A stretch of DNA of 63,837 bases, counting the filler, from Reticulomyxa filosa (taxonomy: Eukaryota > Protista > Foraminifera), in assembly GCA_000512085.1 (NCBI GenBank). It is 18 parts of 18 records of this genome, joined end to end, with 100 filler letters (N's around TTAATTAATTAA, not from the genome) between each part and the next. Parts side by side here need not be neighbours in the genome. Positions count along the whole stretch, not along the records: positions 10,562 to 31,730 come from ASPP01005307.1; 17 more parts are not named here. One strand, given 5' to 3'. Position numbers and translations under genes: made by a program. Numbering within the stretch: position 1 is the stretch's first letter; each line of letters begins with the position of its first letter. Below are positions 13,153 to 28,362 of the stretch, piece after piece. Under the pieces are notes generated by a model. That model did no database searches, was not told where the DNA came from, and saw only the letters and a program-made list of their open reading frames with translations.

Positions 13153-14669
13153 TCATGGTTTTTTTCGCACAATAGGTGGAGCAACTAGTGGTGGAGCAAC
13201 AGAAAATTTGCTAGTGAATAAATTTGAGGGTATTTTGGATTGTGAAGGCGGAGGTGGTGGAGGTGGGGGAGGGAGATTGAGCAAATTCGGATATATGGAA
13301 GGAGCATTAACTGAAGGAACGTTTATTGGCGTATCGAAAGTAGTTGGAGTGCGAATATTATTTGTTTTGAGCGGCTGTGATTGTTGTTTATTATTAATGT
13401 GAGCATGGGGAGCTTCACCTTCACCCATGTTGATATAAAAAAAAGAAGCAAATTCATTGTCGGAATTGAGCGAAATATCAGGCTTGATGGTAACAGCAGT
13501 TTCATTGGAGGGATATGCACTACACACTTGAAAACAGGTCATCAAAGTATTCTTTCAACTCCAAAATGCCTTGGACACCAAGTATATGAATGGCACCATT
13601 TTTAAAAATATGAGCACTTCCTTTGGTATACGTACTGTGAATGTAACGAAGATATTCTGCAGAATACATTTCTGGATCCAAATCAGCATTGTCTGGACAC
13701 CCCCTTTCCAAGCCCTTTAAATCAATTCCGTGAGCTAACTTTGCTGTCCCACTCAAACCGGCAATCGTCACTTTTTTAACCACACTTTTTATATCTAATT
13801 CGACCTTAATGCATTTGCGAATTTTTGCGACTATTTTGCGAATGGCGACGATCCCTATATATTATATTTAATACATGTGATCAAATAAATTTGTCCGTCT
13901 TTGATAAGAAAAGAAAAATGAATGAGTTGTACACAAGACCAATAATCGAAGATTTCACTCCAATAACGGTGATGGTGCCAGTAGTGAAAATATTTCCAAT
14001 GACATTTGGATTTCGAATTTGTATTCGAATGACTACCATATCTTTTGGATTGAAAAATACATTGGGTAATTTCCGTGATAATTCGTGCAAGTTTAATGTC
14101 ATTCCTATATTTGTGGAAAGGTTCATTGCGGTTATTTTTGGAGGTTCTTTCCATTGACTTCCGAACTTGGACGGCGGAAGTTCGTTTATTACTTCATTGT
14201 TTGCCATGTATCCTTTCTGTGCTTTCATCGAACTGCTATTGTTATCGTTACGAAATATCTCTTCGGGAACTCCATTGAGATATAGTACCTTGTTCGTTTG
14301 TTGAGGTTGCTGCAGCTGTTTTACTTGCTTCGACTTATCAAAAGCAGGTGAAACTATCGGTGGAATAGACGGGATAGACTGGGGTGGATAAGGGTAAGAG
14401 CAACCATATGGATGCGTGGATTGGCATTTATTGACTTGATGACAAGAATAGTGATATCCATGAGAATAAACATTTGGATGGTATGCTGTATTTGAAACTA
14501 CTCTTTGTTTTTGCTGAGTGTCCGATAATTGCGCTTCGGATAATGTTCGTTTATTATTGGTAGTATAAATATTTTTTGGCAATGTCGAATCATTTTCTTG
14601 CTTTATGTTTTCACTCACTGGGTTTGAATGGATAGATTTTTCTACGTCCGATTCTTCGTCACTGTTCAT
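13153..14669 (-). CDS. Divergent TATA-binding-protein-like factor with low-complexity N-terminus and Pro-rich C-terminal extension
   Basis: Intron 13855-13939 joins two TBP repeats (LNLHELSRKLPNVFFNPKDM..IRNP..NIFTTG; IDLKGL..DPEMY..HIFKNG..ILG). As written it stops at 13520; removing one T at 13531-13534 restores LFQVCSAY and extends the frame to 13153. Confidence 0.8.
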
Positions 14670-15763
14670 TCACAATATATACAAGGCGAAATAGTTCTTC
14701 CTATCTCCACATCATTAACATAGTCTTTGTCTTACCTATCAAAGCCATATGCTGACATAATTCGAAGTTTGCAATGTGTTCCTTTTTTTGCTTGTCACTG
14801 CAACCCGAAACATATATAGTTTCAATGTTTAAAAATTTTACAATTTGGGTTAAATAAGAAATTTCATTGTAAAAAAAAATTTGATAAATATTAAGGTGTG
14901 GTGAATCCGATATGTGGAATCAGCGCGTTAACACAACATAGGTACGTCTTAAATTTGCAAAATAGCAAATGTTTCTTATATTAGTTTTTTTTTGGTAATA
15001 TGTCCTTGTCATGCCGTACCTAAGTGGGAAATAAATAATTGACAGCAAAAAAATAATAATAATAATTAACTATTACTAAATTTTTAAAAAAAAACGAGTC
15101 TTTAATCTTCATCAAAATTTTCAAAAAAATTAGCAATTTAGTAAAAACTAAATACATTTAATCTCTAGGATGTATTATTTTAAAAAATTTTGATAGTTTT
15201 TCATTCAAAATTTAAATGTTTACAGAGATTACACGCAATATTTTTCGATGTGACAATTTTTTGGATGTGCTGGATGTGTTGGGCTTTTACTTTGGATGAT
15301 AATCAAAAGGTAATTTGAGCAAACCAGAGTTCTTTTGATATTCAATACGAAAACTTAGCTCAGCGTATTCATTTTAGCGTATACAGGTTCTGTATCTAAG
15401 TAAATATGTTTCACGCTGGCAAATTATTGTAATTTTAATATTTGTTATTCAACTTTCCATTGATTTGCTCGTCCTAATTTCTTTTTTAACGGCAGACATA
15501 AACACATAAAAACTATTGGATTGTGTTTATTTTATAATAGTATTACAATCAGCTATTGTAAACCTTCTCTATTTACCATTCAGTCTGTAACAGTTCTGTT
15601 GTAAAAGCCAAATTGAAAAACATAAGTTAAATGACTATTCTCTCCTGAAGTGAAGCGTTTGCTAATGCATCTTGATTACATGATTTTGATTAAGAAGAGA
15701 AAAATTTAGATAGGGTTTGGTAAGTTGTTGTGATAACAACAATGAATATTTGAAAGAATTGAT

Positions 15764-16520
15764 TCAAGAAGTTTTTAATTTGTGAATTACTTCCTTTTTT
15801 TGGGGCGTTTTTTTGGCACTTCTTTCTTCCTTTTCTTGTCGTGCAATGAGCAAGAAAATATCAACCAAAACACCCAATAAAAGTCCCACGCATCCACAAA
15901 CAATATTCATACCCGGAGTATGTTGAAAAAAATGATGGGATAAATAATAAAATACAAAAAATGATCCCACTAAGACTATGATCAAATGCAAGGCTTGTGT
16001 GGACTCTTTGAACGCTTCTGCGAAATCCTTTCCCACATGTCCGGTGCCCGCTTTTGCATTATCCGCGTGATATGTGGTCAGTTTTTCATATTCACGTTGA
16101 TCCTGTTTTGAGCGAAGCTGAAGCAAATGTTCTTCAAATTGCAATTGTTCTTTGGATTTGCCGGCTTTTTCTTTAATAGATTTTGCAGTTGGAACACAGA
16201 AATCGCTTTCATGCAATAACTCGTGACAATAATACTTTTGCGTGGTCTGGTGCTCGTTTAATCTATAATTTTATGCAATAGTGATCTGTTCAATGTTTTA
16301 AAATGAATTGTCTTTTAGACTTCCTATTTTTGAAAGACGACTGTACTTACGTATTGGCAACGAGCGATACGTCTGATAAAGTGACGAATTCCTTGGTTTC
16401 TAGTGGTTTGATTAATGACCTCAAGTTTTCATTTTTTTCAGAAAGAAGCTCCATACATTTTGCGACTGCATTTTTGAACGCTGCAGACGGAACAAAGTTA
16501 AGTATATTTGGTGATGACAT
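15764..16520 (-). CDS. VMA12: V-ATPase assembly factor Vma12/TMEM199-like
   Basis: Intron 16263-16350. HELL..S, LLQLRSKQDQREYEKLT, two transmembrane helices, C-terminal KLKTS (KxKxx ER retrieval). Confidence 0.8.
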
Positions 16521-16738
16521 AATTAATTTTTTTCAAACAAAAAAACTCAAGAACCTTGCAACTTTTTTGGATAGTTTGTTCTTGTGTGAGAAAGTTGTGT
16601 GATTAATAAATTTTTTAAATTCTTCATTATTGTTATAGAAGTAGGCTCAAGTTTTCAAAAGTTGTACCGGAACAAGTGGCACAGGTCCCCCTTTAAATAA
16701 TAGTGCGACATTAAATTGCAAATCGATCAATTTTAAGT
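16521..16738. promoter_or_regulatory. Probable bidirectional promoter between VMA12-like and QTRT1
   Basis: Head-to-head ATGs separated by 218 bp. Confidence 0.5.
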
Positions 16739-18036
16739 ATGAGTGGGTTGGAATTTAAGGTATTGGGTAAAGCAACTTGCGCTCGACGAGGACAATTAAA
16801 AACAAGACACGGAGTAGTAGAGACTCCAGTGTTCATGCCGGTGGGTACGCAAGGAGCAATTAAAGGTGTAACATTTGAAGAAATGAACAAGATGGGATGT
16901 CAAATATTGTTATGTAACACTTATCATTTGGGTTTGAGACCAGATACAAAAGTCATTGATTCGCTGGGTGGGATCCATGATTTCAAAGGATGGGGTAATA
17001 ATGTGTTGACAGACAGTGGAGGATTTCAAATGGTATCACTGTTGGAATTAGCAGAAATTAATGAAGAGGGAGTGAAATTTCAAAGTCCAATGGACGGTAC
17101 AGAAATGATGTTGACACCAGAAAAGTCAATGGAATTGCAACATGAGATCGGAAGCGACATTATGATGGCGTTAGACGACGTAGTGCCAGCTATGTGCACT
17201 GACGAAAAGAGATTCGAAGAAGCGTGCTATCGCACTATTCGTTGGATTGATCGATGTATCAAAGCACACGAAGTCAAAGACTTAAAAAATAACGTTAGTT
17301 TTAGTCAAAAACAAATTTGTTTGGAATCGTCCAGGGTGGGCTAAACGCGAAATTGCGAAAGTACTGTTTAGAAGAAATGTGCAAGCGGGACAAATATTTG
17401 CCTGGTTATGCTATAGGTATGTTGTAATTAATATTTATAATCGATATATTTTTTTGTTTCGAAATGTAACTAATGCACTTTATGTCCTTCCCTTTGACAA
17501 AAAAAGGTGGACTATGTGGAGGCGAAGCCAAGAACGATTTTTGGAAAACAGTTTATCAATGCACACAAATATTGCCTCACAGCAAACCCAGATATGTGAT
17601 GGGTGTTGGATTCCCTTTGGATTTGGTTGTATGTGTTGCATTGGGTGCCGACATGTTTGATTGTGTTTACCCTTGTCGCACAGCACGCTTTGGAACTGCC
17701 TTGGTTCGCTCTGGAGAGCTGCACTTGAAATCAAGTCAATTCAAATTTGATTTTGCTCCTATTGATGACACGTGCACTTGCTCTACTTGTCTTCATTACA
17801 CCAGAGCCTATTTGCACACTGTTGCTACCAAAGAATCCACTGCAGCTTCGTTATTAACTGTTCATAATATATACTATCTACTAAATTTAATGAAACAAAT
17901 GCGCACTCATATTCAAAATGGATCTTTTCACTCTTTTGTCAAAGAGTTTATGCACAATATGTTCCCCAATGGACCAAAAACGTATCCTACTTGGTGTATT
18001 GCTGCTTTTCACACTGTAGGAATTGACTTCTCCTAA
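16739..18036 (+). CDS. QTRT1: Queuine tRNA-ribosyltransferase catalytic subunit (eukaryotic TGT)
   Basis: [65 protein letters not shown] zinc site. Intron 17417-17506; frame break near 17273-17315. Confidence 0.95.
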
Positions 18037-18197
18037 ATGTTATGCTGCTTCCTCTAAACTACTTGATAAACTACTTTTTCTTGGCAATATATTGCCGATA
18101 AAAATTTTTTTTAACTTATTAAAAGTTGCTTTATCATCGATTGCTTTCGGCTTACTGTTCAAAAGGGGGGCTATAACAAAAAGTACGTTTAAAAAAA

Positions 18198-18949
18198 TGA
18201 GTATTTCTAAAAGGCACACCCAGCAACGAAAGAACCTTCCTTATCATGAGATTCAATCACGAAGACTATGTCTGCTGCATGCAGTCAATGCAATACTTGG
18301 AAACAGTGTTTACAGCAAGAAAGACCTAGATTCTTTTTGCAAAGAAATGGATGCAAGTTTTTTGAACAGACACCACTCATGGCTGTTAAGTACGAAAAAA
18401 TTGTGGACAATATTTTGTATGCGGTATATTGATGTCAAATAGTGGCGACGGTAACTATGATGCCAATGTATTAATGATGGCGTTGGAAAAAAAAACTATA
18501 TGGTGGAGTGGTTTGATGCTCGCAAAAGTTCTTTTATATTTTTTCTAAGAAATTTTGGAGTGTCTCAAATTAATTATTACCAAAAAATATATATGTGTGA
18601 ATGTGATAATCAAAAAATTTGAATAGTTGATACATTTGATTTGAAAGATATAACAAAGAGCGATTTTGCAGGGTTTGTATTAAATATCCCCCGCAAAAAA
18701 TTTCACTTTTTTGAAGGAAGACATTGGTTGACTGTCAAAAATGTTGAGGACAAATGGTGGAACTTGGATTCTTCCAAAAAGGTACCTGAAGAAATGGACT
18801 CTGAAAAAGCAACGAAGTTCATTTGTGAATGGATTCACAAGCGGGGGGAATTGATGATCATTCGAAAAGTGCAACAGTCGGTAACTTCGTCTGACACTTT
18901 GAATAGAAGCGAAACATTAACAAGTGAAACAATTGAGGAAAAGAAGTAA
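18198..18949 (+). CDS. Josephin-domain deubiquitinase (JOSD1/2-like)
   Basis: YHEIQSRRLCLLHAVNAIL, GNYDANVLMMAL, RHW, WWNLDS (Cys-His-Asp triad). Introns about 18390-18442 and 18528-18647; A-run shifts. Confidence 0.88.
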
Positions 18950-19660
18950 GTATACTGGAGGAAAAAAAGGGAAAAAATGCTTCGGGGCTTTTTTGTTTTA
19001 ACAAGTTGCTAAACAATCTTAATTACTGTCAGGTCCTTCTCGTAATATGTAGAAATGACGATGTTACACTTAAAAAATATTGTCATTAACGTGCTTGAAT
19101 CATCGCACATATATCTATTATTTCCTGTAACAAATGAATTAGTACCGCAAAATGGTCATTGCAAAAAAATCTTGATTATATTAGTTTATCATGGCTCCAC
19201 ATTTTCACAGGTTGCTTTTGATTGTTTTCAAAATACAAAGCAAAGAAGCAAACGCGCACAAAAGAACATAATTTTCAACGAAGACAAATAAATGACAGAA
19301 AGCAAAAAAGAAGAAACAAACACCAAACTGTCCCCAAAGAAAGCATAAACAACAAACATACACAAAGAAGAAGGAAAAAATAAAACATAATAAAAATAAA
19401 AAAATAATTTGAATTATGGATTTTTTCCTTTTTTATGTTTACGAAGATTAAGATTGCACACAAATAGGTCACAAAATAGATCTGAGAATACGAAAACATT
19501 ATAAAAGTCACATAAATAAAAGAAATTTGTGCAATCGTTTTCGGAGTATCAATCAAAACATCAACTGTGAAAGAGAGAAAGTTTAAAAAGTAATAATTTC
19601 CTTTCACTTTGTGCACTCGCAAAAAAACAAAAAAATGTGTACAGAAAAGGGGTTTACTTA

Positions 19661-20782
19661 TCAAAAAAGACTGCCAGCTGTCCTTGCATCAGTAACAGTC
19701 GATAGAGTAAGCGTTTTGCTGTGCTCTGGTTCGCTAACGTAACTGACCAATATGGACTCGTCACCATAAATGATACCATTTGTAGGTTCGTGAGCAGACA
19801 TTTGAGATTCAAGATGTGGAGTTTTGTCGTCCAATTCGAATGGGCTGTTACTACCAGAATATTGCTGTTGCAGACTGAGATCATTGTCTTCCTCATTATT
19901 TTGAAAAGACAAATTCACATCAAATTCGTTATTGTTTTCATTTATCGTAATATTGGAAAATTTTTTGTTGATTTGAATTGAGGTTATCCCTGCTTTTTCT
20001 TCTTCATCGGTTTCTCCTTCCTCTTCATTTTCTTCTTTTTGATCATTATTGTATTTATTCTCTTTGTCGGAAATGAACTCACTTTTGAAATTGATAAAAG
20101 GTGGTGGTGGAGTTTTTTCCTTTTTTGGCGCGACTGTTGTCACTGTCTCATTTGTGTCCAATGTCTTGGCGGTATTGCTGTTGTTTTCCGGTAACGATGG
20201 CCGTTGGGCTTGCGTTGTCTTCACTTTTGCATTTGCTCCCTCTGGCGAAGACCCTTTCGTTCCTTTTTTTTCGACCCCCTTTCTTATTCTTTTTTTCTTA
20301 CTTTTTTGTGATTCAAGAGAGAGAAAAGTCGAATTTTCTCCATTCTCATCCCAATCCCCTCTTGAATTAGTCTCCTTTTTCGTATCCCTACATTCTGACT
20401 CCGTTGTTTCAGTTGCACATGATAATGACTCATTTTTAGATTCCATGTCCGATTCTTTTTTTTTTTGCATATACACATACACATATGGCGTCTTTATGTT
20501 TATAAAAATACACAAATGACTCATGTGGAAGCGTCAAATCATAGCTGATTCTATCACTTTTGAGCTTTTTACTGTGCCAAATGTTTGACTTTTCATTGCA
20601 TGTCGACAGACACTTTTCTTTGTTATTTTCGCTTCCTCTGCTTCTCCATCTTTATTTGGCTTACAAAGGAAAACAAGGTAAAAAAAGTATTGAAAAAGAT
20701 GATCACCTGTGTGACGTGATTTATTATCTCCAGCAATGGTTCCTCCGTTCAAGGTAGTACAAGGTGAACAGGTTGCACCCAT
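19661..20782 (-). CDS. Low-complexity acidic protein with N-terminal MGATCSPC lipidation-type motif
   Basis: Long biased ORF; probable introns 20650-20706 and about 20456-20521; one apparent frameshift. Confidence 0.55.
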
Positions 20783-21042
20783 TTCAATATTCTTTGTTGG
20801 GGCAAAAATTCCAAATTATAGATTTATAACAAAATTTTACCGGGTCTTTTTCTTTCCCCGTTTTTAGCATAAAAAAAATTTAGAATTATCATTAAATCGT
20901 TAATGATATAACTTTCCTTTATGATAGATATTTTAGTAAACAAAATTGTAGAATGGGTTGATCTTGAGCAGAGCGAGCAAACAAAAGAAGGAACTCGATA
21001 AAAAGGTTCAAGTCGAAATATTGATTTGACGTGTAATATAGT

Positions 21043-22399
21043 ATGAAATATCAGCCGAAATATTATTTATGTTTGTTAATTTGGATATTATTTATTGTAT
21101 CGTACCAACTTCTTTCTTCAAAACTACAAAAATTCGAGATCCAAAGCAGTGTAACTCTTGCATTACCAGCATGGCTGACGTCTGAGATTTTGGTATTTGA
21201 ATATCCAGGACAATGGAATACAAGCCGAAATGGGAGTACGCTGGTGCAATTGTTATTATTTTCCCGAATTCCAAAATGCGGGACAACCATGCTGAGTGAG
21301 TCAATAAATGACTTGGGTCAGCTGCATGTGGAATACATTTTGCCACACTTTAACTCGGTGCATTATCCCAACGCGCATCCAAAGGAGCGCTATGATCAAG
21401 GCTGTGACAACGCTGCACAATTCAAACAATTTGTAAAAGACGCATTGGACAGAATTGAAGAAAGTTTGTCTGCAAATAAAAAAGTCGAAAAAACCTTGCA
21501 CATGTTGACATTTCACAAGCCAATACATAGTCTCAACGAAACGATGCGTTTAATTCACGAGCTTCATGCAAATCATAAGCTTCAGTTTCAATCCAAACTT
21601 GTGTACATTACTATGGTACGTAATCCTGTCAAACGTTTGATAAGTGTATTTTATTATTTAAGGGGGTTAAGTGAACTTTTTTTCCTTTCTTGATGAACAC
21701 GACTTATTATTTTTTTGTTCCATCCCTCTTGTTCGATAAGGCAGTTACAATGCTGGCTCAATTGGAGGTTCCAATACATATCGAATAACTAATTCGCATT
21801 TGATTAAGGAGACTCTTGCGATAACACATAATCTTACCATCGAGCAATGCATTCAAATGCAATATGATACAATTTTTCATCAGAACAAAGAAAATCCTTG
21901 CTTTTTGTCACGCAATTATCTGACCAAATGGTTTTGCGATGAATCGCAATGTAAAAAGCATTTTGATCTCATCAACAGCAATAATGACTTGATCTTGGAA
22001 GGTGCATGGAAAAATATTGATCGACTTTATACATTTGTCGGAGTGCTGGAATACTGGGACGCGTCCTTATTGTGGCTTTGGTACAAATTTGGTGAAACCT
22101 TTCTATTTGATAAGGAAGAGAGGAAAAACAATCGCAAATATCACACGTGGATTGATTTTGACAAACACGACATTGAAAAAGTAAGCCGTTATGTTTTAGG
22201 ATCTGTTGGCACTCAAACATTGGAATCAAGTGACAAGTCTACCTACCCTGCGCTTAATATGAAGTATCGTGCAATGTTGGAAGAAATGAATGCACTGGAT
22301 ATGAAACTGTACAATGGCATTGTCGAAAAATTTAAAACATACATTGAACCTCAAATGCAACCTTATATACAAAAATACTACAACAAATTCAAACAATGA
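21043..22399 (+). CDS. Golgi type II membrane sulfotransferase (Sulfotransfer_2 / HS2ST-like)
   Basis: N-terminal transmembrane helix; 5'-PSB motif RIPKCGTT; 3'-PB motif ITMVRNPVKRLISVFYYLR; FVGVLEY. Intron about 21671-21740. Confidence 0.85.
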
Positions 22400-23581: not shown

Positions 23582-26500
23582 ATGGGTATCAAATCAAGTA
23601 CAAATGCCAAAGTGGAACAAGGAAGAGCAGTTGAGAAACTACAAAGATAGAGAAGTAGCTTTTTTAAAAAATGAAGAGATCTTTCTCTAATATTTGTTGA
23701 GGCCGAAATTAGAAGTATGTACACAAAAACGCAACGAATAGCCAACAACACGTCGTATCCCAAGTTGTAAAGATCAAGAAAAGTGCCAATCGGTTCGAAA
23801 CATAAACCAACGACATAAATACACGATCAGTGATTTGAACCACATTACAGAGTATTCACACCCTCGTAAAATATGCAAAGAGGGATCACAGTGTAACTAT
23901 TACATTCGACTAATGAAAGGAAGTTATAATGTGGAGGATCTGTGCCATTACAGCGTGTATTTGCATCCACTGTCGCGTTTCGTGACGCAATTTACGAATA
24001 ACAATAAGTCAACGAAAAATGAAAATAAATCTAAAAAAGTGGACAAAAACAACGCCGACACCAACGAAGCTCAAAGCAATACACTGCAAGTCCAAAGGAC
24101 AGGAGGCAAAGACGGCATTGGTTCAAGCAAGAAAGTGGGTGTTATGATATGTGATGGCCGATGTGGTTCAGTTATTACAAGAGGTCTGTGGAAGTGTTGG
24201 TGTTATCGCGATCTCATTTGGAAATATCAATATCGACGGTACGCATATTAGTCTAAAAAAATGTTTCCCTTTTTTTATTTACCCTATCAGACAAAAAAAA
24301 GTTGAAACACGTATATAGCATGTATTTATATGTCTTTAATTATAACGCTATGCATATATGCACATATGCATATGCACATATTTATGTATATACCTATGCA
24401 TATGCACCTTGTGTATGTGCGTTTGTCACGATGCCAAAGCTACCACCAGTTGAAAGACAATACCGAAATAAAGAATGGAAAGGACGAGGATGAAACGGAA
24501 AGTCGAGACTTCCATGCAGCGTTGTCGACGATGGTGGATAGTGTAATAGCGGTGGCGGGAGAAACGTTTTTGGAGGAAATGTATGAATTGATAAGTGAAT
24601 GTAAGGGGATTGAAGCCGCAAGCCCAACTGTAGCTTCAACTACATCCACAGTCACAACCGAATCCGCCATAGCAAATGCAACGCCGACAATAAATACGTC
24701 CGATAAAGTCACAAATGAGACAAGTCCATCTCTCGGAAAATCCAAATTTTCCAAAAAAAATAACACTTTGACGGAAACCAACGAACAATGGCAAAGAGAA
24801 TTTGGGAGACTGTTGTTGGAATTTAGTGAAAGCACTCGACAAGAATTTGGTTGTGAGAACAAAGATTTCCCACTTATTCGAAAAGGTAAAAAGTGGCAAA
24901 CCCCAGACATTTATGGCGTTTTAATTGGCGTTGCTAATTCCAAACTGCGCATTTTACCACTTGACCCTGTCACCAACAAGCCAGATACCAAATCTACAAG
25001 AAATTTGAGACATGATATTTTTTCAAAAGGTTAAAAAAAAAAGGGACAGAAAGAAAAGGAAAGGAAACACAAAATTTCTTTTGTTTGATCTTTAAAAAAA
25101 AAGGCTGCAAAAATGGCAGTCGTACATTGTTCAAAGAGATCGAAGCAAACAACTTTGAGGCGGCATTGCAAATTGGTCGCTTCAGCGAAAAGACAATTCA
25201 ACATTTAAATGAAGTAAACATCTCAGAGAACTCGGGAGAATGCTATGGATATATCAATTGCCACTGGGAAACGTTGCAAGAAGTGGCAGTGGAAAAGCTG
25301 AATCATCCAAGACATCTGGAAATGGGTGCCTGTTTGCAAGAAAGTGAGCTTTTGAGTATCTTATTACTTACCGGCACGTCGGTCGGCATTGACCTGATCA
25401 ATGCTCATCGCAACAAAAAGAATTATTGCAAATGGAGGGTACTTCAAAATAATTTGATCAGTGCATTACGTAAAATGTATGAATTCGACAAGCATTCTTT
25501 GCCCAATCAGCTGTTTCATGGACTTAAAAGAGATCCAAATATGGTATTCATTCATTTATTTTATTTTGCTTGTTTGTTTTGCAATGTGCGTATACACGAA
25601 ACGTTATCCTATCACAACAATAAATAATAATAAATAATAAATAAAAAGGAAAAAGATGGAAGAAACGAAGGTGATCAAATGTATTTGTTCAATACGTTTG
25701 TCTCAACGACATTAGATCATCGATTGATTCAATCTTCGTTCACAACACATAAGGAAGGCGCATTATTATTTTTGGACAGACAAGAACCCGTCATTTGCGC
25801 AGACATATCCTGGATCAGCAAGTTTGCATTCGAACATGAAATATTATTTGCACCTTGTGCACTCACTTTGCCATCGCCTTTCACAGAAAGTTTGTGTGTT
25901 TTTTTTCCCCTCTGTCGCGTTCTCGCACAAAGTGCAATGTGATCATTTTGTTTTGCTAACGGCAATCACGAAACTGCTGTGCACATCTTGCCACCCCAAT
26001 GAATTCAGAAAATGAAAAGTCGTCAAGTGATAAGAAAAGTCGTAGCGAGGCAACAAAAGCACACCGAAATAATCGCCAAGGCCATCGCAAGCCAAAAGCA
26101 AAGGAAAATGAGAAGAACAAAGACAAAGACAAAGACAAAGATAAAGATAAAGATGCAGCGCGAAAAAATAAAAAAAAAAGAAAGACAAAGCCTCGAAACA
26201 TGCTCGACGAGACCGTGGGATTTCAATTGCGGATTTGTCTGTGACGCGCGAAAAAGCGGACGAAGAGACGCGAGCGAAGAAGAACAAGCCCAAGGATCGA
26301 AGCAAACCTTCCCACGACTACGTCCGTCCAGGGACGTCACGGGACGTCCGAGGGGCACTCAAGTTTTCATTAATCGATGGGCGTTTGGAAGCCTTTTCCA
26401 TTGACAGTACCTATTCCCAAAGCATTGGCACAAGCATTTTGGCTACCCATGCCCATACCAGTCAAGGTTACTCTTCCCTTCTCTCGTTTGTGCGTGCTCC

Positions 26501-28362
26501 ATTGCACACATTTAGATTGTCTGTTTGTTCGTGTTGACAGTGACCATTGATAGCAAGCCCCCTGAAAAGCCTGAGATTGAAAATTCCAGTGATGTTTTGT
26601 ATGACTTGGCAGTTACGTTGCGCAGGGAGGAGGGATACATGTTTGTATGTTACAAATTTCATGCGATGAGCAACAACACAATGAAAATATATGCAAAATG
26701 GTTCAGAATAGAATCGATTTGGATGTGGTGGCCAATTTTTTGTATGGAAATACGACACCACAAGGATTGTGGGACCATTTGGATACAAAGAATGAAGGTG
26801 AGATATCAATAGACCGTTTGCAAAACTTGTTTTTGGCTGTGTTTGTGTTGTCTATCCAAATTGAGGCCAGTCCCAATGTGCACGCCTATTTGGGTCGCTG
26901 CCAACACTTGGCTTTTGATTACGCACAAAAGTTTGCCAATAATATCAGCACGAACATCGGCAGTCCGTCTCTGAAAAAACAGGATTTCATTGACAACGTG
27001 ACCATGCTAAATGACATGCACTCCAACTTTAGCTCCACGCTCTTGCAACAGATTATTCAAGATACTGAAAAGGCACAAGAACACACCAAGAAGCAGTCAT
27101 CCAATTCCACACCTGCACATCATACCACTGTACCTTCCGCCGATCAAGAGAAAATACCTCTTCAACAAGTCGATGTCATCGAAGATGTTGCCAGCAACGT
27201 TGCCGCCATTCGGGATTATTGCATCAACGCGTGCACTTTACGACAGCTGTGGGCGCATTTTATGCAGTCGACACCGGAGAAACTGGTATTTTTCTATGAC
27301 ATTGCACGTGTGTGTGTGTGTGTAGGATATGTAAAGCACTACCTTTTTTTTTTTTTTTATGTATACGTATGCGTTCTATCATGTATCGATATTTTTTGGG
27401 GGGTTTACTTAGGCCAACTTTATGGATTACACACAATTTGACGTGGTCGTCTTTGCTGCTCTGGCCTACTTTGTGCAACAAAGGAATCCAGATGCTCCTT
27501 TGGCCACGAGAATGTCATTAAATCCGTTGATTGATCAACTGAGTATGAGCTTGTTGGCGGCCTATGATCCAAATCAACGAGGGTACATCACATATGATGA
27601 CTTTGAAGCGTTTGGAGAATACTTGAGAGATGAATTTGGCAAACTCCGCGGCAGCATTTTGGCCCAGGATGTGCAACAGCAGGACAGTGAGGGATACAAT
27701 GTGAATACGCCAAACATTCCCACTGAACCACTGCCCATTGACTCGAGTGAAGACATCCAAAAGCTGCAAACAAACAAAATTGAAAACGAAGACAGCAGTG
27801 AGGACTCACTAGGAATGGAACTCGACACTAGAGACATTAATTCTAGTCCAGAGATGAAAAACAACAATATTGATTTGGAAACGGTCCATAAAGAGAGAGA
27901 GTTTGAAGATAAGAAAGAAGATGCCACCGATGAAAACGACTTGGACAAGTTTGGTTTTATCTTCGTGGTTGTATTTGTTTCACACTAAAAAAAATTCGCT
28001 TCTTATTTTGCCATGATAAATCTTAAAAAATTCAAATAAAATAAAAAAGCCAAATCGTTGAATCGCTGGAACAAATGAAAGAGCAAGTTGACATTTTTTT
28101 GGATATTTTGCGGTCAACTACACAAAAATTGCAAACTCAAGGGCAAGAAAAAAGCACAAATTTCAATGCTAGAGACCTTTTGAAAGCTGGACAAGAGCAA
28201 ATTGAACAAATCACAGCTGATATCAAAGAAATGGAGATCCAGTGTAACAATTTGCAAGATAACAAAGTCCGCTACAAATACGCACAAATGATTAACACTT
28301 TAGATATGGAAAAATTTGATCTAAACTCCAAACTTAAATCCATTGCATTGCAAGGCAAGTGA
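23582..28362 (+). CDS. Ten-exon protein: two PBZ-like zinc fingers, degenerate ZZ-like motif, ADP-ribosyltransferase-like domain, EF-hands, C-terminal helical bundle
   Basis: Phase-compatible GT-AG introns 23655-23741, 24239-24439, 25030-25103, 25544-25648, 25890-26008, 26467-26540, 26641-26711, 27286-27412 and 27949-28049; one A-run shift at 26170-26179. Start is 23582 or 23604. Motifs LFHGL, FVSTT, DISWISKFAFEHEILF; DTKNEGEISIDRL; DPNQRGYITYDDF. Confidence 0.72.

Follow-up and report, generated by a model that had tools for sequence, protein, structure and literature searches.

Within the window, the 63,837-nucleotide stretch of Reticulomyxa filosa DNA analysed here, open segments on the plus strand between positions 23582 and 28362 chain through nine introns into a reading of ~1262 codons. 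All nine introns are of the GT-AG type and, as the initial annotation had proposed, phase-compatible. The exons (E1 to E10), the introns and the principal motifs are as follows.

23582..23611, plus strand: exon 1, start codon ATG at 23582 and MGIKSST N-myristoylation-type start
23742..24238, plus strand: exon 2, fingers 1 and 2, Asn/Lys-rich linker and small C.G.CG motif
Cys 23766 to His 23861, plus strand: finger 1, C-x5-C-x18-H-x5-H
Cys 23874 to His 23966, plus strand: finger 2, C-x5-C-x17-H-x5-H
24440..25029, plus strand: exon 3, between fingers and ART domain, partly low-complexity (Ser/Thr-rich)
25104..25543, plus strand: exon 4, first half of the ART-like domain, with helical part, LLTGT helix and LFHGL strand
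25517-25519, plus strand: His of LFHGL, where R-S-E enzymes have Arg
25649..25889, plus strand: exon 5, second half of the ART-like domain, with S-T-T and E-H-E
25697-25711, plus strand: FVSTT (S-T-T at 25703-25711), at the position of the S-T-S motif
25832-25840, plus strand: E-H-E of FEHEILF (Glu 25832-34 and Glu 25838-40), aligned with Q-E-E of ART2.2
26009..26466, plus strand: exons 6 and 7, Lys/Asp/Arg-rich linker, frame 0 to frame 2 at or just after an A10 run
26541..26644, plus strand: exon 8a, short coding exon that contains no start codon
26707..27285, plus strand: exon 8, EF-hand-like module 1 (degenerate loops), linker and entering helix of module 2
27413..27948, plus strand: exon 9, rest of EF-hand-pair module 2 (loop DPNQRGYITYDD), then an acidic low-complexity tail
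28050..28362, plus strand: exon 10, helical C-terminal region, stop TGA at 28360-28362
Introns, plus strand, GT-AG: E1/E2, E2/E3, E3/E4, E4/E5, E5/E6, E7/E8a, E8a/E8, E8/E9 and E9/E10

The locus is a real multi-exon foraminiferal gene that encodes a PBZ-like finger pair and an intracellular ART-type domain. A Bolivina fragment (P0002) reads directly across the E3/E4 junction and sets the end of exon 3, whose frame has the best coding score and which has no match in Pfam or PDB; alignments of many relatives cross E4/E5, and the alignment with P0003 holds the frame of exon 2 up to 24209. At E1/E2, where an alternative donor at 23630 is likewise in phase, P0003 and P0009 also have an MGxxxS start directly before the fingers. 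Further downstream, the in-frame coding score of exon 8a (0.31, versus -0.18 and -0.26) is the highest in the locus, and its phases fit the donor at 26467 and the GTATGT...TTCAG intron at 26645-26706. The E8/E9 intron falls inside one EF-pair module, and exon 10 (in-frame score 0.17) joins through a phase-2 junction, AA/GTTTGG...AAAAAG/. The DNA downstream of exon 10 is AT-rich, and no further exon was found there. Neighbours on the contig are housekeeping genes such as TGT, TBP, Josephin and Vma12.

The proposed MGIKSST start is present and fits the pattern M-G-x-x-x-[STAGCN] (PROSITE PS00008) with no forbidden residues. An MG..[ST] start occurs in 10 of the 52 relatives described below (P0003, P0006, P0009 and seven others). 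The protein is probably N-myristoylated. Neither a signal peptide nor a transmembrane segment is predicted: the N-terminus is hydrophilic, and no 19-residue stretch exceeds a KD value of 1.7 except a buried ART helix. The product is therefore predicted to be cytosolic, in agreement with the earlier proposal and unlike the vertebrate ecto-ARTs.

A phmmer search with exon 4 retrieved 52 relatives (best E 6.3e-34), and all those that carry names are from Foraminifera (Bolivina, Nonionella). Finger region and ART region are both present in ~35 of the 52, so the combination is conserved, and the unit of finger pair and ART marks out a foraminiferal family, with ubiquitin-like, PH or PUB domains as further additions in its members.

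Membership of the ART-like core in the R-S-E/ARTC ADP-ribosyltransferase superfamily is supported by the family profile, the Pfam matches of relatives and a predicted structure. No single exon of the window reaches any Pfam threshold (exon 5 against ADPrib_exo_Tox gives E 0.16); the region 25031-25861 matches family profile A1 at E 2.5e-43. The family profile in turn matches rat ART2.2 (E 4.5e-6), Vis (1.6e-4) and HopU1 (6.8e-4) in alignments that bring Y-x-G, STS and ExE into register, and Pfam ART (PF01129) is matched by 23 of 44 relatives, at best with 43.7 bits against a cut-off of 22.3. Structural evidence comes from the AlphaFold model of the close relative P0004; in the window, the domain is split by an intron. 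The ART part of that model has a pLDDT of ~90, and Foldseek returned 87 ART matches at E<=1e-3, including ART2.2 (TM 0.60, E 5.7e-6), ExoS, C3 and Tre1 (TM 0.76), which demonstrates an ART fold in this relative and is in line with the ART-like core named in the initial annotation.

Both of the Cx5C..HxxxYxH fingers that had been described lie in exon 2. The C, C, H, H ligands of finger 2 are invariant in the finger-pair alignment (A2), a genome search with this profile finds the locus as sole match (E 2.8e-21), and the AlphaFold model of the finger stretch has a pLDDT of 89. Their assignment to PBZ, and with it the claim that they read poly(ADP-ribose), fared less well, since they fail the PBZ model. 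The window fingers have no match to Pfam PBZ (PF10283) at E<=1 and are absent from the genome's PBZ matches even at E<=10, two canonical PBZ elsewhere in the genome scoring 47.5 and 36.2 bits; the fingers of relatives reach at most 18.6 bits, below the Pfam gathering threshold of 22.7. Alignment with a canonical PBZ of the same genome by hhalign covers only 12 columns (probability 11%). The spacing between second Cys and first His is 17 (38 of 46 motif matches among relatives) or 18, compared with 6 in PBZ, which amounts to an insertion of 11-12 residues, and the window has Asp/Glu in place of the ADP-ribose-contacting Tyr of CxYG. In Foldseek, the finger-pair model ranked APLF (2KUO) third and CHFR (2XOC) fifth, with E values of 2.4-3.9, and Nab2-type CCCH fingers level with APLF, none of them significant; VIA-align gave no Z>=2 to the PBZ of APLF or CHFR and a best Z of 2.3 in a wide search, and no solved structure was found to resemble the model. 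These results would suit a distinct CCHH zinc module that would bind nucleic acid or protein or buttress the ART domain instead of reading ADP-ribose or PAR, its PBZ likeness being limited to a shared zinc-knuckle motif. We give this explanation slightly less than an even chance. Against it, PBZ is the only recurrent Pfam resemblance of the fingers (7 of 10 relatives), and the family consensus retains both halves of the PBZ signature, CxYGxxC and HxxxYxHP; the window itself has HxxxYxHP in both fingers and the Gly in finger 2. Fusion to an ADP-ribosylation enzyme also parallels the PBZ-PARP fusions known in Dictyostelium, Entamoeba and others (PMC4245714).

Behind the ART domain, the proposed Lys/Asp-rich linker is present at ~26009-26300, followed by two EF-like regions. 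Module 2, formed by exon 9 and the end of exon 8, is homologous to EF-hand proteins: it aligns over the whole domain of the same-genome paralogues L011 and L012 (E 1.6e-12, 38% identity), which match Pfam EF-hand_7 (PF13499) with 42 bits, and orthologous fragments 70% identical to exon 9 were found in Globobulimina turgida and Bolivina argentea. Module 1 (exon 8) is the weaker of the two EF-hand regions first described: it has a tblastn match to L009 (1.6e-4) and Atlas features for EF-hand/FCaBP (0.92), and aligns along the full length of the small EF-hand protein L012 with an hhalign probability of just 15%; no homologue of 153-486 aa was found for exon 8. Both regions have degenerate loops. 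A canonical 12-residue EF-hand loop (ligands 1, 3, 5 and 12; PROSITE-type pattern), which paralogues L012 and L014 do fit, occurs in no exon. The best loop in the window, DPNQRGYITYDD, has Arg at position 5, and in the orthologues P0053 and P0054 ligand position 12 is Ala, which argues against the suggested regulation by Ca2+; such control is not established.

The same applies to the C-terminal helices, in which a resemblance to a Vti1 Habc domain had been noted. Against the Pfam V-SNARE N-terminus (PF05008), exon 10 gives E 0.12 and 13.2 bits, below the cut-off of 25.9; the only other hint is a marginal ungapped match to the VAMP2 SNARE motif (E 0.011). The protein ends at 28362, with no downstream exon for a SNARE motif and anchor, and a Vti1-type Habc/V-SNARE domain is not supported.

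A reading of both halves as one protein has to cross the E6/E7 boundary. E6 (frame 0) has an in-frame TGA at 26242 and E7 lies in frame 2, so that reading from one to the other requires either an intron or, at the A10 run (26170-26179), a frame change of one base; the sole option for the former, of 53-80 nt, is GC-rich, unlike all other introns, and not convincing. The locus could accordingly hold two genes, a finger-ART protein of ~800 residues ending at TGA 26242 or earlier and a downstream EF-hand-like/helical gene whose start would be an internal ATG such as 26377 (with splicing into exon 8a), 26647/26698 or 27422. We consider this arrangement possible, with a probability nearer one in three than one in two. 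Further points in its favour are that the EF-hand half is absent from all 52 relatives retrieved with exon 4, that same-strand genes of the contig can be separated by just ~160 nt, and that the beginning of module 1 (RIDLDVVANFL) resembles the N-terminus of the genome's small EF-hand proteins. The foraminiferal fragments P0053 and P0054 moreover have Met at the position of the exon 9 start or eight residues earlier, which would suit a separate C-terminal protein and unspliced or partial transcripts equally.

Other features of the locus speak for continuity. By score, both E7 (in frame 2) and E8a (in frame 1) are coding, yet neither has a start codon (the frame-2 part of exons 6 and 7 has no ATG), and each therefore depends on an exon upstream; frame 2 scores at least as well as the frame of ATG 26377. 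Within the contig, no stretch is richer in GC or poorer in T than 26160-26500: its GC content of 0.50-0.54 compares with 0.28-0.35 in all intergenic DNA, and its composition is unlike that of any intergenic or intronic DNA there. Translation from exon 9 onwards would leave the EF-hand pair without its first helix, and assemblies commonly miscount an A10 run by one base. The continuous coding signal and compatible introns behind the original one-protein claim hold, whereas its passage through E6/E7 needs a frameshift; the join of ART half and EF half, read from coding statistics and splice phases, is not established. A single cytosolic protein of ~1260 residues, comprising zinc-finger pair, ART-type fold, EF-like modules and helical tail, is the reading that we prefer, with a probability of about one half.

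The triad of the ART-like domain reads His-(S-T-T)-(E-H-E), and the family profile places the His opposite the Arg of VYRGT in rat ART2.2. The canonical Arg is thus replaced, as it is in most of the family: the position is occupied by Ser in 12, His in 11 and Thr in 8 relatives, with Ala and Cys among the others, and Arg is found in 4 of 41 aligned relatives. FHGL recurs in the orthologous fragment P0001, and the nearest full-length relatives (P0003, P0006 and P0012) retain the full R-S-ExE. An ExE motif is associated with Arg-directed transfer, a specificity also named in the initial annotation; with the catalytic Arg replaced by His and unconserved in the family, Arg is no more than a candidate target here, and the domain could be inactive or perform other chemistry. 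To our knowledge, Arg binds NAD in all characterised R-S-E enzymes, and its mutation strongly lowers the activity of C3, cholera-like and pertussis-like toxins. That the domain is a catalytically dead scaffold, the protein acting through binding by its fingers, EF-like modules and tail, is in our view less likely than not. Against it, S-x-S and E-x-E are nearly invariant in a family divergent at 20-35% identity, which argues for selection on the active site; active H-Y-E enzymes have His at the equivalent position, and the three nearest full-length relatives keep the Arg.

In the working model, the conserved functional unit is an N-terminal CCHH finger pair before an NAD-binding ADP-ribosyltransferase fold of the ARTC/R-S-E type. 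The most likely mechanism would be NAD-dependent mono-ADP-ribosyl transfer or NAD hydrolysis through the invariant STS and ExE; His would stand in for Arg in contacting NAD, as it does in H-Y-E enzymes. The fingers may be a PBZ derivative with an 11-residue insertion, serving in nucleotide- or ADP-ribose-directed targeting or as a structural module. The C-terminal half, with its basic/acidic linker, two EF-hand-pair-like modules with degenerate ligands and helical tail, would more probably be a region of protein interaction or localisation than a calcium switch.

The most far-reaching interpretation, which we regard as quite improbable in its entirety, is an undescribed foraminiferal system of intracellular ADP-ribosylation signalling. 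Here, insertion-bearing PBZ-derived fingers would read ADP-ribose or NAD-derived marks and be hard-wired to an ARTC-type writer with an H/S/T-S-ExE site lacking the canonical Arg. Added ubiquitin-like, PH and PUB domains would account for the diversity of the system. In the present gene, myristate would anchor it to membranes, and EF-hand-like and SNARE-like modules would be linked to it; if true, the reticulopodial network would have ADP-ribosylation tied to its membrane or cytoskeletal traffic.

PARPs are credited with most intracellular ADP-ribosylation, and the characterised eukaryotic ARTC-type enzymes that we know of are extracellular. The locus represents a conserved foraminiferal family with a cytosolic ARTC-type fold behind PBZ-like zinc fingers, in most members of which the 'essential' Arg has been lost and STS and ExE retained. 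If active, the family would widen the known R-S-E active-site repertoire and provide a second, independent fusion of a reader-like module to an ADP-ribose writer, beside the PBZ-PARP fusions. At least 90 more ART-like genes are present in this genome, which raises the possibility that Rhizaria have in ADP-ribosylation a major regulatory or conflict system that is unstudied.

Among known systems, L011/L012, small EF-hand-pair proteins of this genome that are N-acylated (MGCC... start) and FCaBP/calflagin-like according to the Atlas, have a canonical loop (DTNGDGVISFEEF); here the module is embedded twice in a large protein, and the window and its orthologues lack such a loop. The PBZ of APLF and CHFR (PF10283) share the C-x5-C and H-x5-H ligand pairs, whereas the fingers described here have an insertion of 11-12 residues, sub-threshold scores, no Tyr of CxYG in the window and no significant structural match. 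Tandem fingers fused to an ADP-ribosyl-transferring enzyme are common to the PBZ-PARP fusions, in which the partner is a PARP instead of an ARTC-type (mono-ART) domain. Bacterial R-S-E toxins and effectors (C3, ExoS/ExoT, Vis, HopU1, Tre1 and Certhrax) have the ART fold, STS and ExE in common with an endogenous eukaryotic gene that has spliceosomal introns and housekeeping neighbours, and lacks the Arg and any secretion or translocation part. The vertebrate ecto-ARTs (ARTC1-5; PF01129; rat ART2.2, PDB 1GXY/1OG4) are alike in fold and in motif order (LYTG helix, aromatic-x-G strand, S-x-S, [Q/E]-x-E), and rat ART2.2 is the best match both by sequence profile (E 4.5e-6) and by structure (E 5.7e-6). 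The foraminiferal protein differs from them in having no signal peptide, GPI signal or transmembrane segment, in the change of Arg to His, in the zinc fingers ahead of the domain and the long extra region behind it, and in belonging to a foraminiferal expansion.

Codon usage, compatible splice phases and homology identify a real gene at the 23582–28362 locus. It lies on the plus strand of a 21-kb contig (window 10562–31730; GC ~35%) in a 102-Mb assembly of 50,809 contigs. Stop-to-stop segments on this strand chain through nine GT–AG introns of 62–201 nt with compatible phases, recovering the multi-exon chain of the initial annotation at ~1262 codons across exons E1–E10.

Exons of the locus
23582–23611, plus strand: E1, open segment, phase-compatible splicing
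23742–24238, plus strand: E2, open segment, phase-compatible splicing
24440–25029, plus strand: E3, open segment, phase-compatible splicing
25104–25543, plus strand: E4, open segment, phase-compatible splicing
25649–25889, plus strand: E5, open segment, phase-compatible splicing
26009–26466, plus strand: E6+E7, frame change inside
26541–26644, plus strand: E8a, open segment, phase-compatible splicing
26707–27285, plus strand: E8, open segment, phase-compatible splicing
27413–27948, plus strand: E9, open segment, phase-compatible splicing
28050–28362, plus strand: E10, open segment, phase-compatible splicing

Codon-usage scoring, trained on other genes from the contig and the genome, ranked the proposed frame best in most exons, with a narrow margin for E2 and E7. 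Homology searches were run exon by exon on the unjoined exons, and four junctions are independently supported. The Bolivina fragment P0002, for which no source contig is recorded, is continuous over the E3/E4 splice site, alignments of many relatives span E4/E5, and the intron between E8 and E9 splits a single EF-hand-pair module. At E1/E2, the relatives P0009 and P0003 also carry an MGxxxS start right before the fingers, in agreement with the proposed MGIKSST start. Because the P0003 alignment stays in frame 2 up to 24209, E2 is read as a single exon, and a frame-0 reading of 24148–24237 was dropped. An Rfam search of the contig piece (window 10562–31730) returned no match. Upstream, 13881–22399 holds housekeeping-type genes with identities confirmed by Pfam, among which the gap between the TGT and Josephin genes is ~160 nt.

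Genes upstream of the locus, identified by Pfam
13884–14669, minus strand: TBP
15767–16216, minus strand: Vma12-like
16739–18033: queuine tRNA-ribosyltransferase (TGT), two exons
18641–18946: Josephin
21043–21690: sulfotransferase

No single exon of the locus reached a Pfam threshold, and the identity of the core was established through its relatives. With exon 4 as the query, exhaustive phmmer searching recovered 52 relatives; of 44 tested, 23 match the Pfam ART family PF01129 (best 43.7 bits) and five match ADPrib_exo_Tox. A profile built from the relatives matches rat ART2.2 (E = 4.5e-6), as well as Vis and HopU1, with its own aromatic-x-G strand, STS and ExE lining up with the catalytic elements of ART2.2, and it matches the window locus at E = 2.5e-43. 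For P0004, a close relative, an AlphaFold model in which fingers and ART exceed pLDDT 90 has 87 structural matches at E ≤ 1e-3, including ART2.2, ExoS, C3, Tre1 and Certhrax. From its relatives, the core is therefore assigned to the R-S-E/ARTC-type fold, and the ART-like core first proposed from the sequence stands. Metagenome scans with exons 4 and 8 found no related locus, and when long relatives were sought with the P0003 ART region, the query protein was the sole match.

The active-site motifs of the window protein are His (LFHGL), S-T-T and E-H-E. Across the family, S-x-S and E-x-E are close to invariant, unlike the Arg position, which is occupied by S (12), H (11), T (8), R (4) and others. 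Arg is retained in the nearest full-length relatives (P0003, P0006 and P0012), and the closest fragment, the orthologous P0001 from a 711-nt source contig, has His there, as in the window. That STS and ExE are so strongly conserved speaks for an active site that may still work; the missing Arg speaks for a change in how NAD is handled, or for an inactive domain.

Both finger motifs named in the initial annotation are found in the window. Finger 2 conforms over the family to C-x5-C-x17-H-x5-H with all four ligands invariant (consensus CKYGxxCxAxxRLxxGGxxLxDxCHxxxYxHPPR), and finger 1 is less strictly conserved. The only recurring Pfam family on the fingers is PBZ (PF10283), matched in seven of ten relatives, mostly over the CxYGxxC half, at 9.9–18.6 bits against a cut-off of 22.7; the window's own fingers, which lack the Tyr of CxYG, are not matched by Pfam PBZ. 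Alignment of the finger profile with one canonical PBZ of the genome using hhalign covered only 12 columns. The finger-pair model is confident (pLDDT 89), and a structure search with it gave no significant neighbour, APLF and CHFR ranking third and fifth at E > 2. The finger-pair profile matched the genome at the locus gene only, and a PDB sequence search with the finger region gave no useful match. The fingers may fairly be described as a PBZ-like derivative into which 11 residues are inserted; their membership of the PBZ family is not established. Two canonical PBZ fingers occur elsewhere in the genome (L020:1483–1584, plus strand, 47.5 bits; L021, minus strand, 36.2 bits); the organism therefore has standard PBZ besides the insertion-bearing finger.

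All named relatives belong to Foraminifera (Bolivina argentea, Nonionella stella and Globobulimina turgida). The finger–ART unit is joined to a ubiquitin-like domain in P0004, P0023, P0045 and P0048, to a PH domain in P0006, P0025 and P0039, and to a PUB domain in P0039, partners that hint at possible links to ubiquitin signalling and membranes. The finger–ART relative P0011 is encoded at L026:8001–9107 on a 1.5-Mb long-read contig from an environmental sample (ENA ERZ20067936, ptg000136l), adjoining short-chain dehydrogenase and uricase genes, and the family is thus present in a further organism; P0013 lies on a contig of equal length, 1.5 Mb. ART-like genes are also very greatly expanded in the R. 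filosa genome, with a minimum of 90 loci recovered by the family profile (the 90 scored among 223 first-look candidates; E down to 6e-48), for example C11507:16005–16760 and C7326:2317–3168. Most are intron-less ORFs of ~500–550 aa without the finger pair. In the four examined closely (L002, L003, L005 and L006), Cys takes the place of Arg (LYCGL/LYCKL), and VSTSDD (as VSASDN in two) and ExE (as EREILF) are retained.

Alignment shows exon 9 to be a clear homologue of small EF-hand-pair proteins that start MGCC and are encoded elsewhere in this genome (E = 1.6e-12); these match PF13499 at 42 bits. Orthologues of exon 9 in Globobulimina and Bolivina are 70% identical. Module 1, in exon 8, aligns weakly along the same EF-pair template, and no homologue of 153–486 aa was found for the 278-aa open frame of exon 8. 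A resemblance of exon 8a to locus L009, noted by eye, was dropped, as L009 aligns with exon 8. The small proteins, ~120 aa long (L011:1483–1869, minus strand; L012:1060–1422, plus strand; also L013–L016), are the nearest relatives of exon 9, have an MGCC start of the dual acylation type and one canonical loop each, and an Atlas search points to similarity with flagellar calcium-binding protein (FCaBP). The calcium-binding consensus is matched by the paralogues but by no loop in the exons of the locus; Arg occupies position 5 of the best of these loops, and position 12 is Ala in the exon 9 orthologues. The proposed calcium regulation through EF-hands is consequently not supported by the predicted loops.

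Whether the ART and EF halves form one gene turns on E6/E7, where frame 0 of E6 meets TGA at 26242 and the coding frame beyond is frame 2. The sole GT–AG intron candidates here span 53–80 nt at GC 0.51, unlike all other introns of the gene. If the A10 run at 26170–26179 were miscounted by one base, E6+E7 would be one open exon; a second, allelic copy of 25890–26720, sought in the assembly as a check on the run, was not found. Continuity is favoured because E7 and E8a score as coding yet contain no ATG, and because no part of the contig is richer in GC and poorer in T than 26160–26500 (GC 0.50–0.54 versus 0.28–0.35 in all intergenic DNA). Two separate genes are favoured, conversely, by the absence of the C-terminal half from all 52 relatives found with exon 4, by intergenic gaps on the contig that can be only ~160 nt, and by the exon 9 orthologous fragments P0053 and P0054, whose initial Met falls on the exon boundary or shortly ahead of it. 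On balance we lean slightly towards a single gene, and the putative fusion of the finger–ART unit with the EF-hand half is plausible. Putative exon 7 includes a short direct repeat rich in GC, GGGACGTC(A/C)CG, at 26310–26350, which encodes PGTSRDVRG and contains two of the only four GACGTC sites of the window. The GACGTC repeats at 26333–26348 were dropped as a promoter element, the four sites having no association with gene starts.

Exon 10 is helical, and the Vti1 Habc-like tail once proposed for it finds only a marginal match to the V-SNARE N-terminus (E = 0.12). Residues 6–60 (28066–28230) align without gaps over 55 residues with the VAMP2/synaptobrevin SNARE motif, also marginally (E = 0.011); the Arg sits one residue off the zero layer, and the stretch is not followed by a membrane anchor. 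No further exon was found 3′ of exon 10, and an Atlas search with it gave no usable match. A likeness of the P0053 tail to exon 10 was dropped, BLASTP being empty and 1578 of 2000 shuffles scoring equally high. PDB sequence searches with exon 3 and with the paralogue L003 gave no useful match. The protein has neither a signal peptide nor a transmembrane segment, and its MGIKSST start matches the myristoylation pattern, as do the starts of 10 of the 52 relatives.

The finger–ART unit is solid; calcium control, the Habc tail and a reader–writer function, as suggested at the outset, are unproven. In the literature searched we found no paper on ARTC-type enzymes in Foraminifera, and an earlier description is possible. 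The window protein resembles ARTC/C3-type mono-ARTs in fold and motifs, but departs from them in the Arg criterion and in the ecto-enzyme criteria. Fusions of PBZ with PARP are already known (PMC4245714) and parallel the window protein, in which the partner is ARTC-type and the finger is modified. The protein is thus a variation on known kinds: an ARTC-type fold joined to a modified PBZ-like finger.
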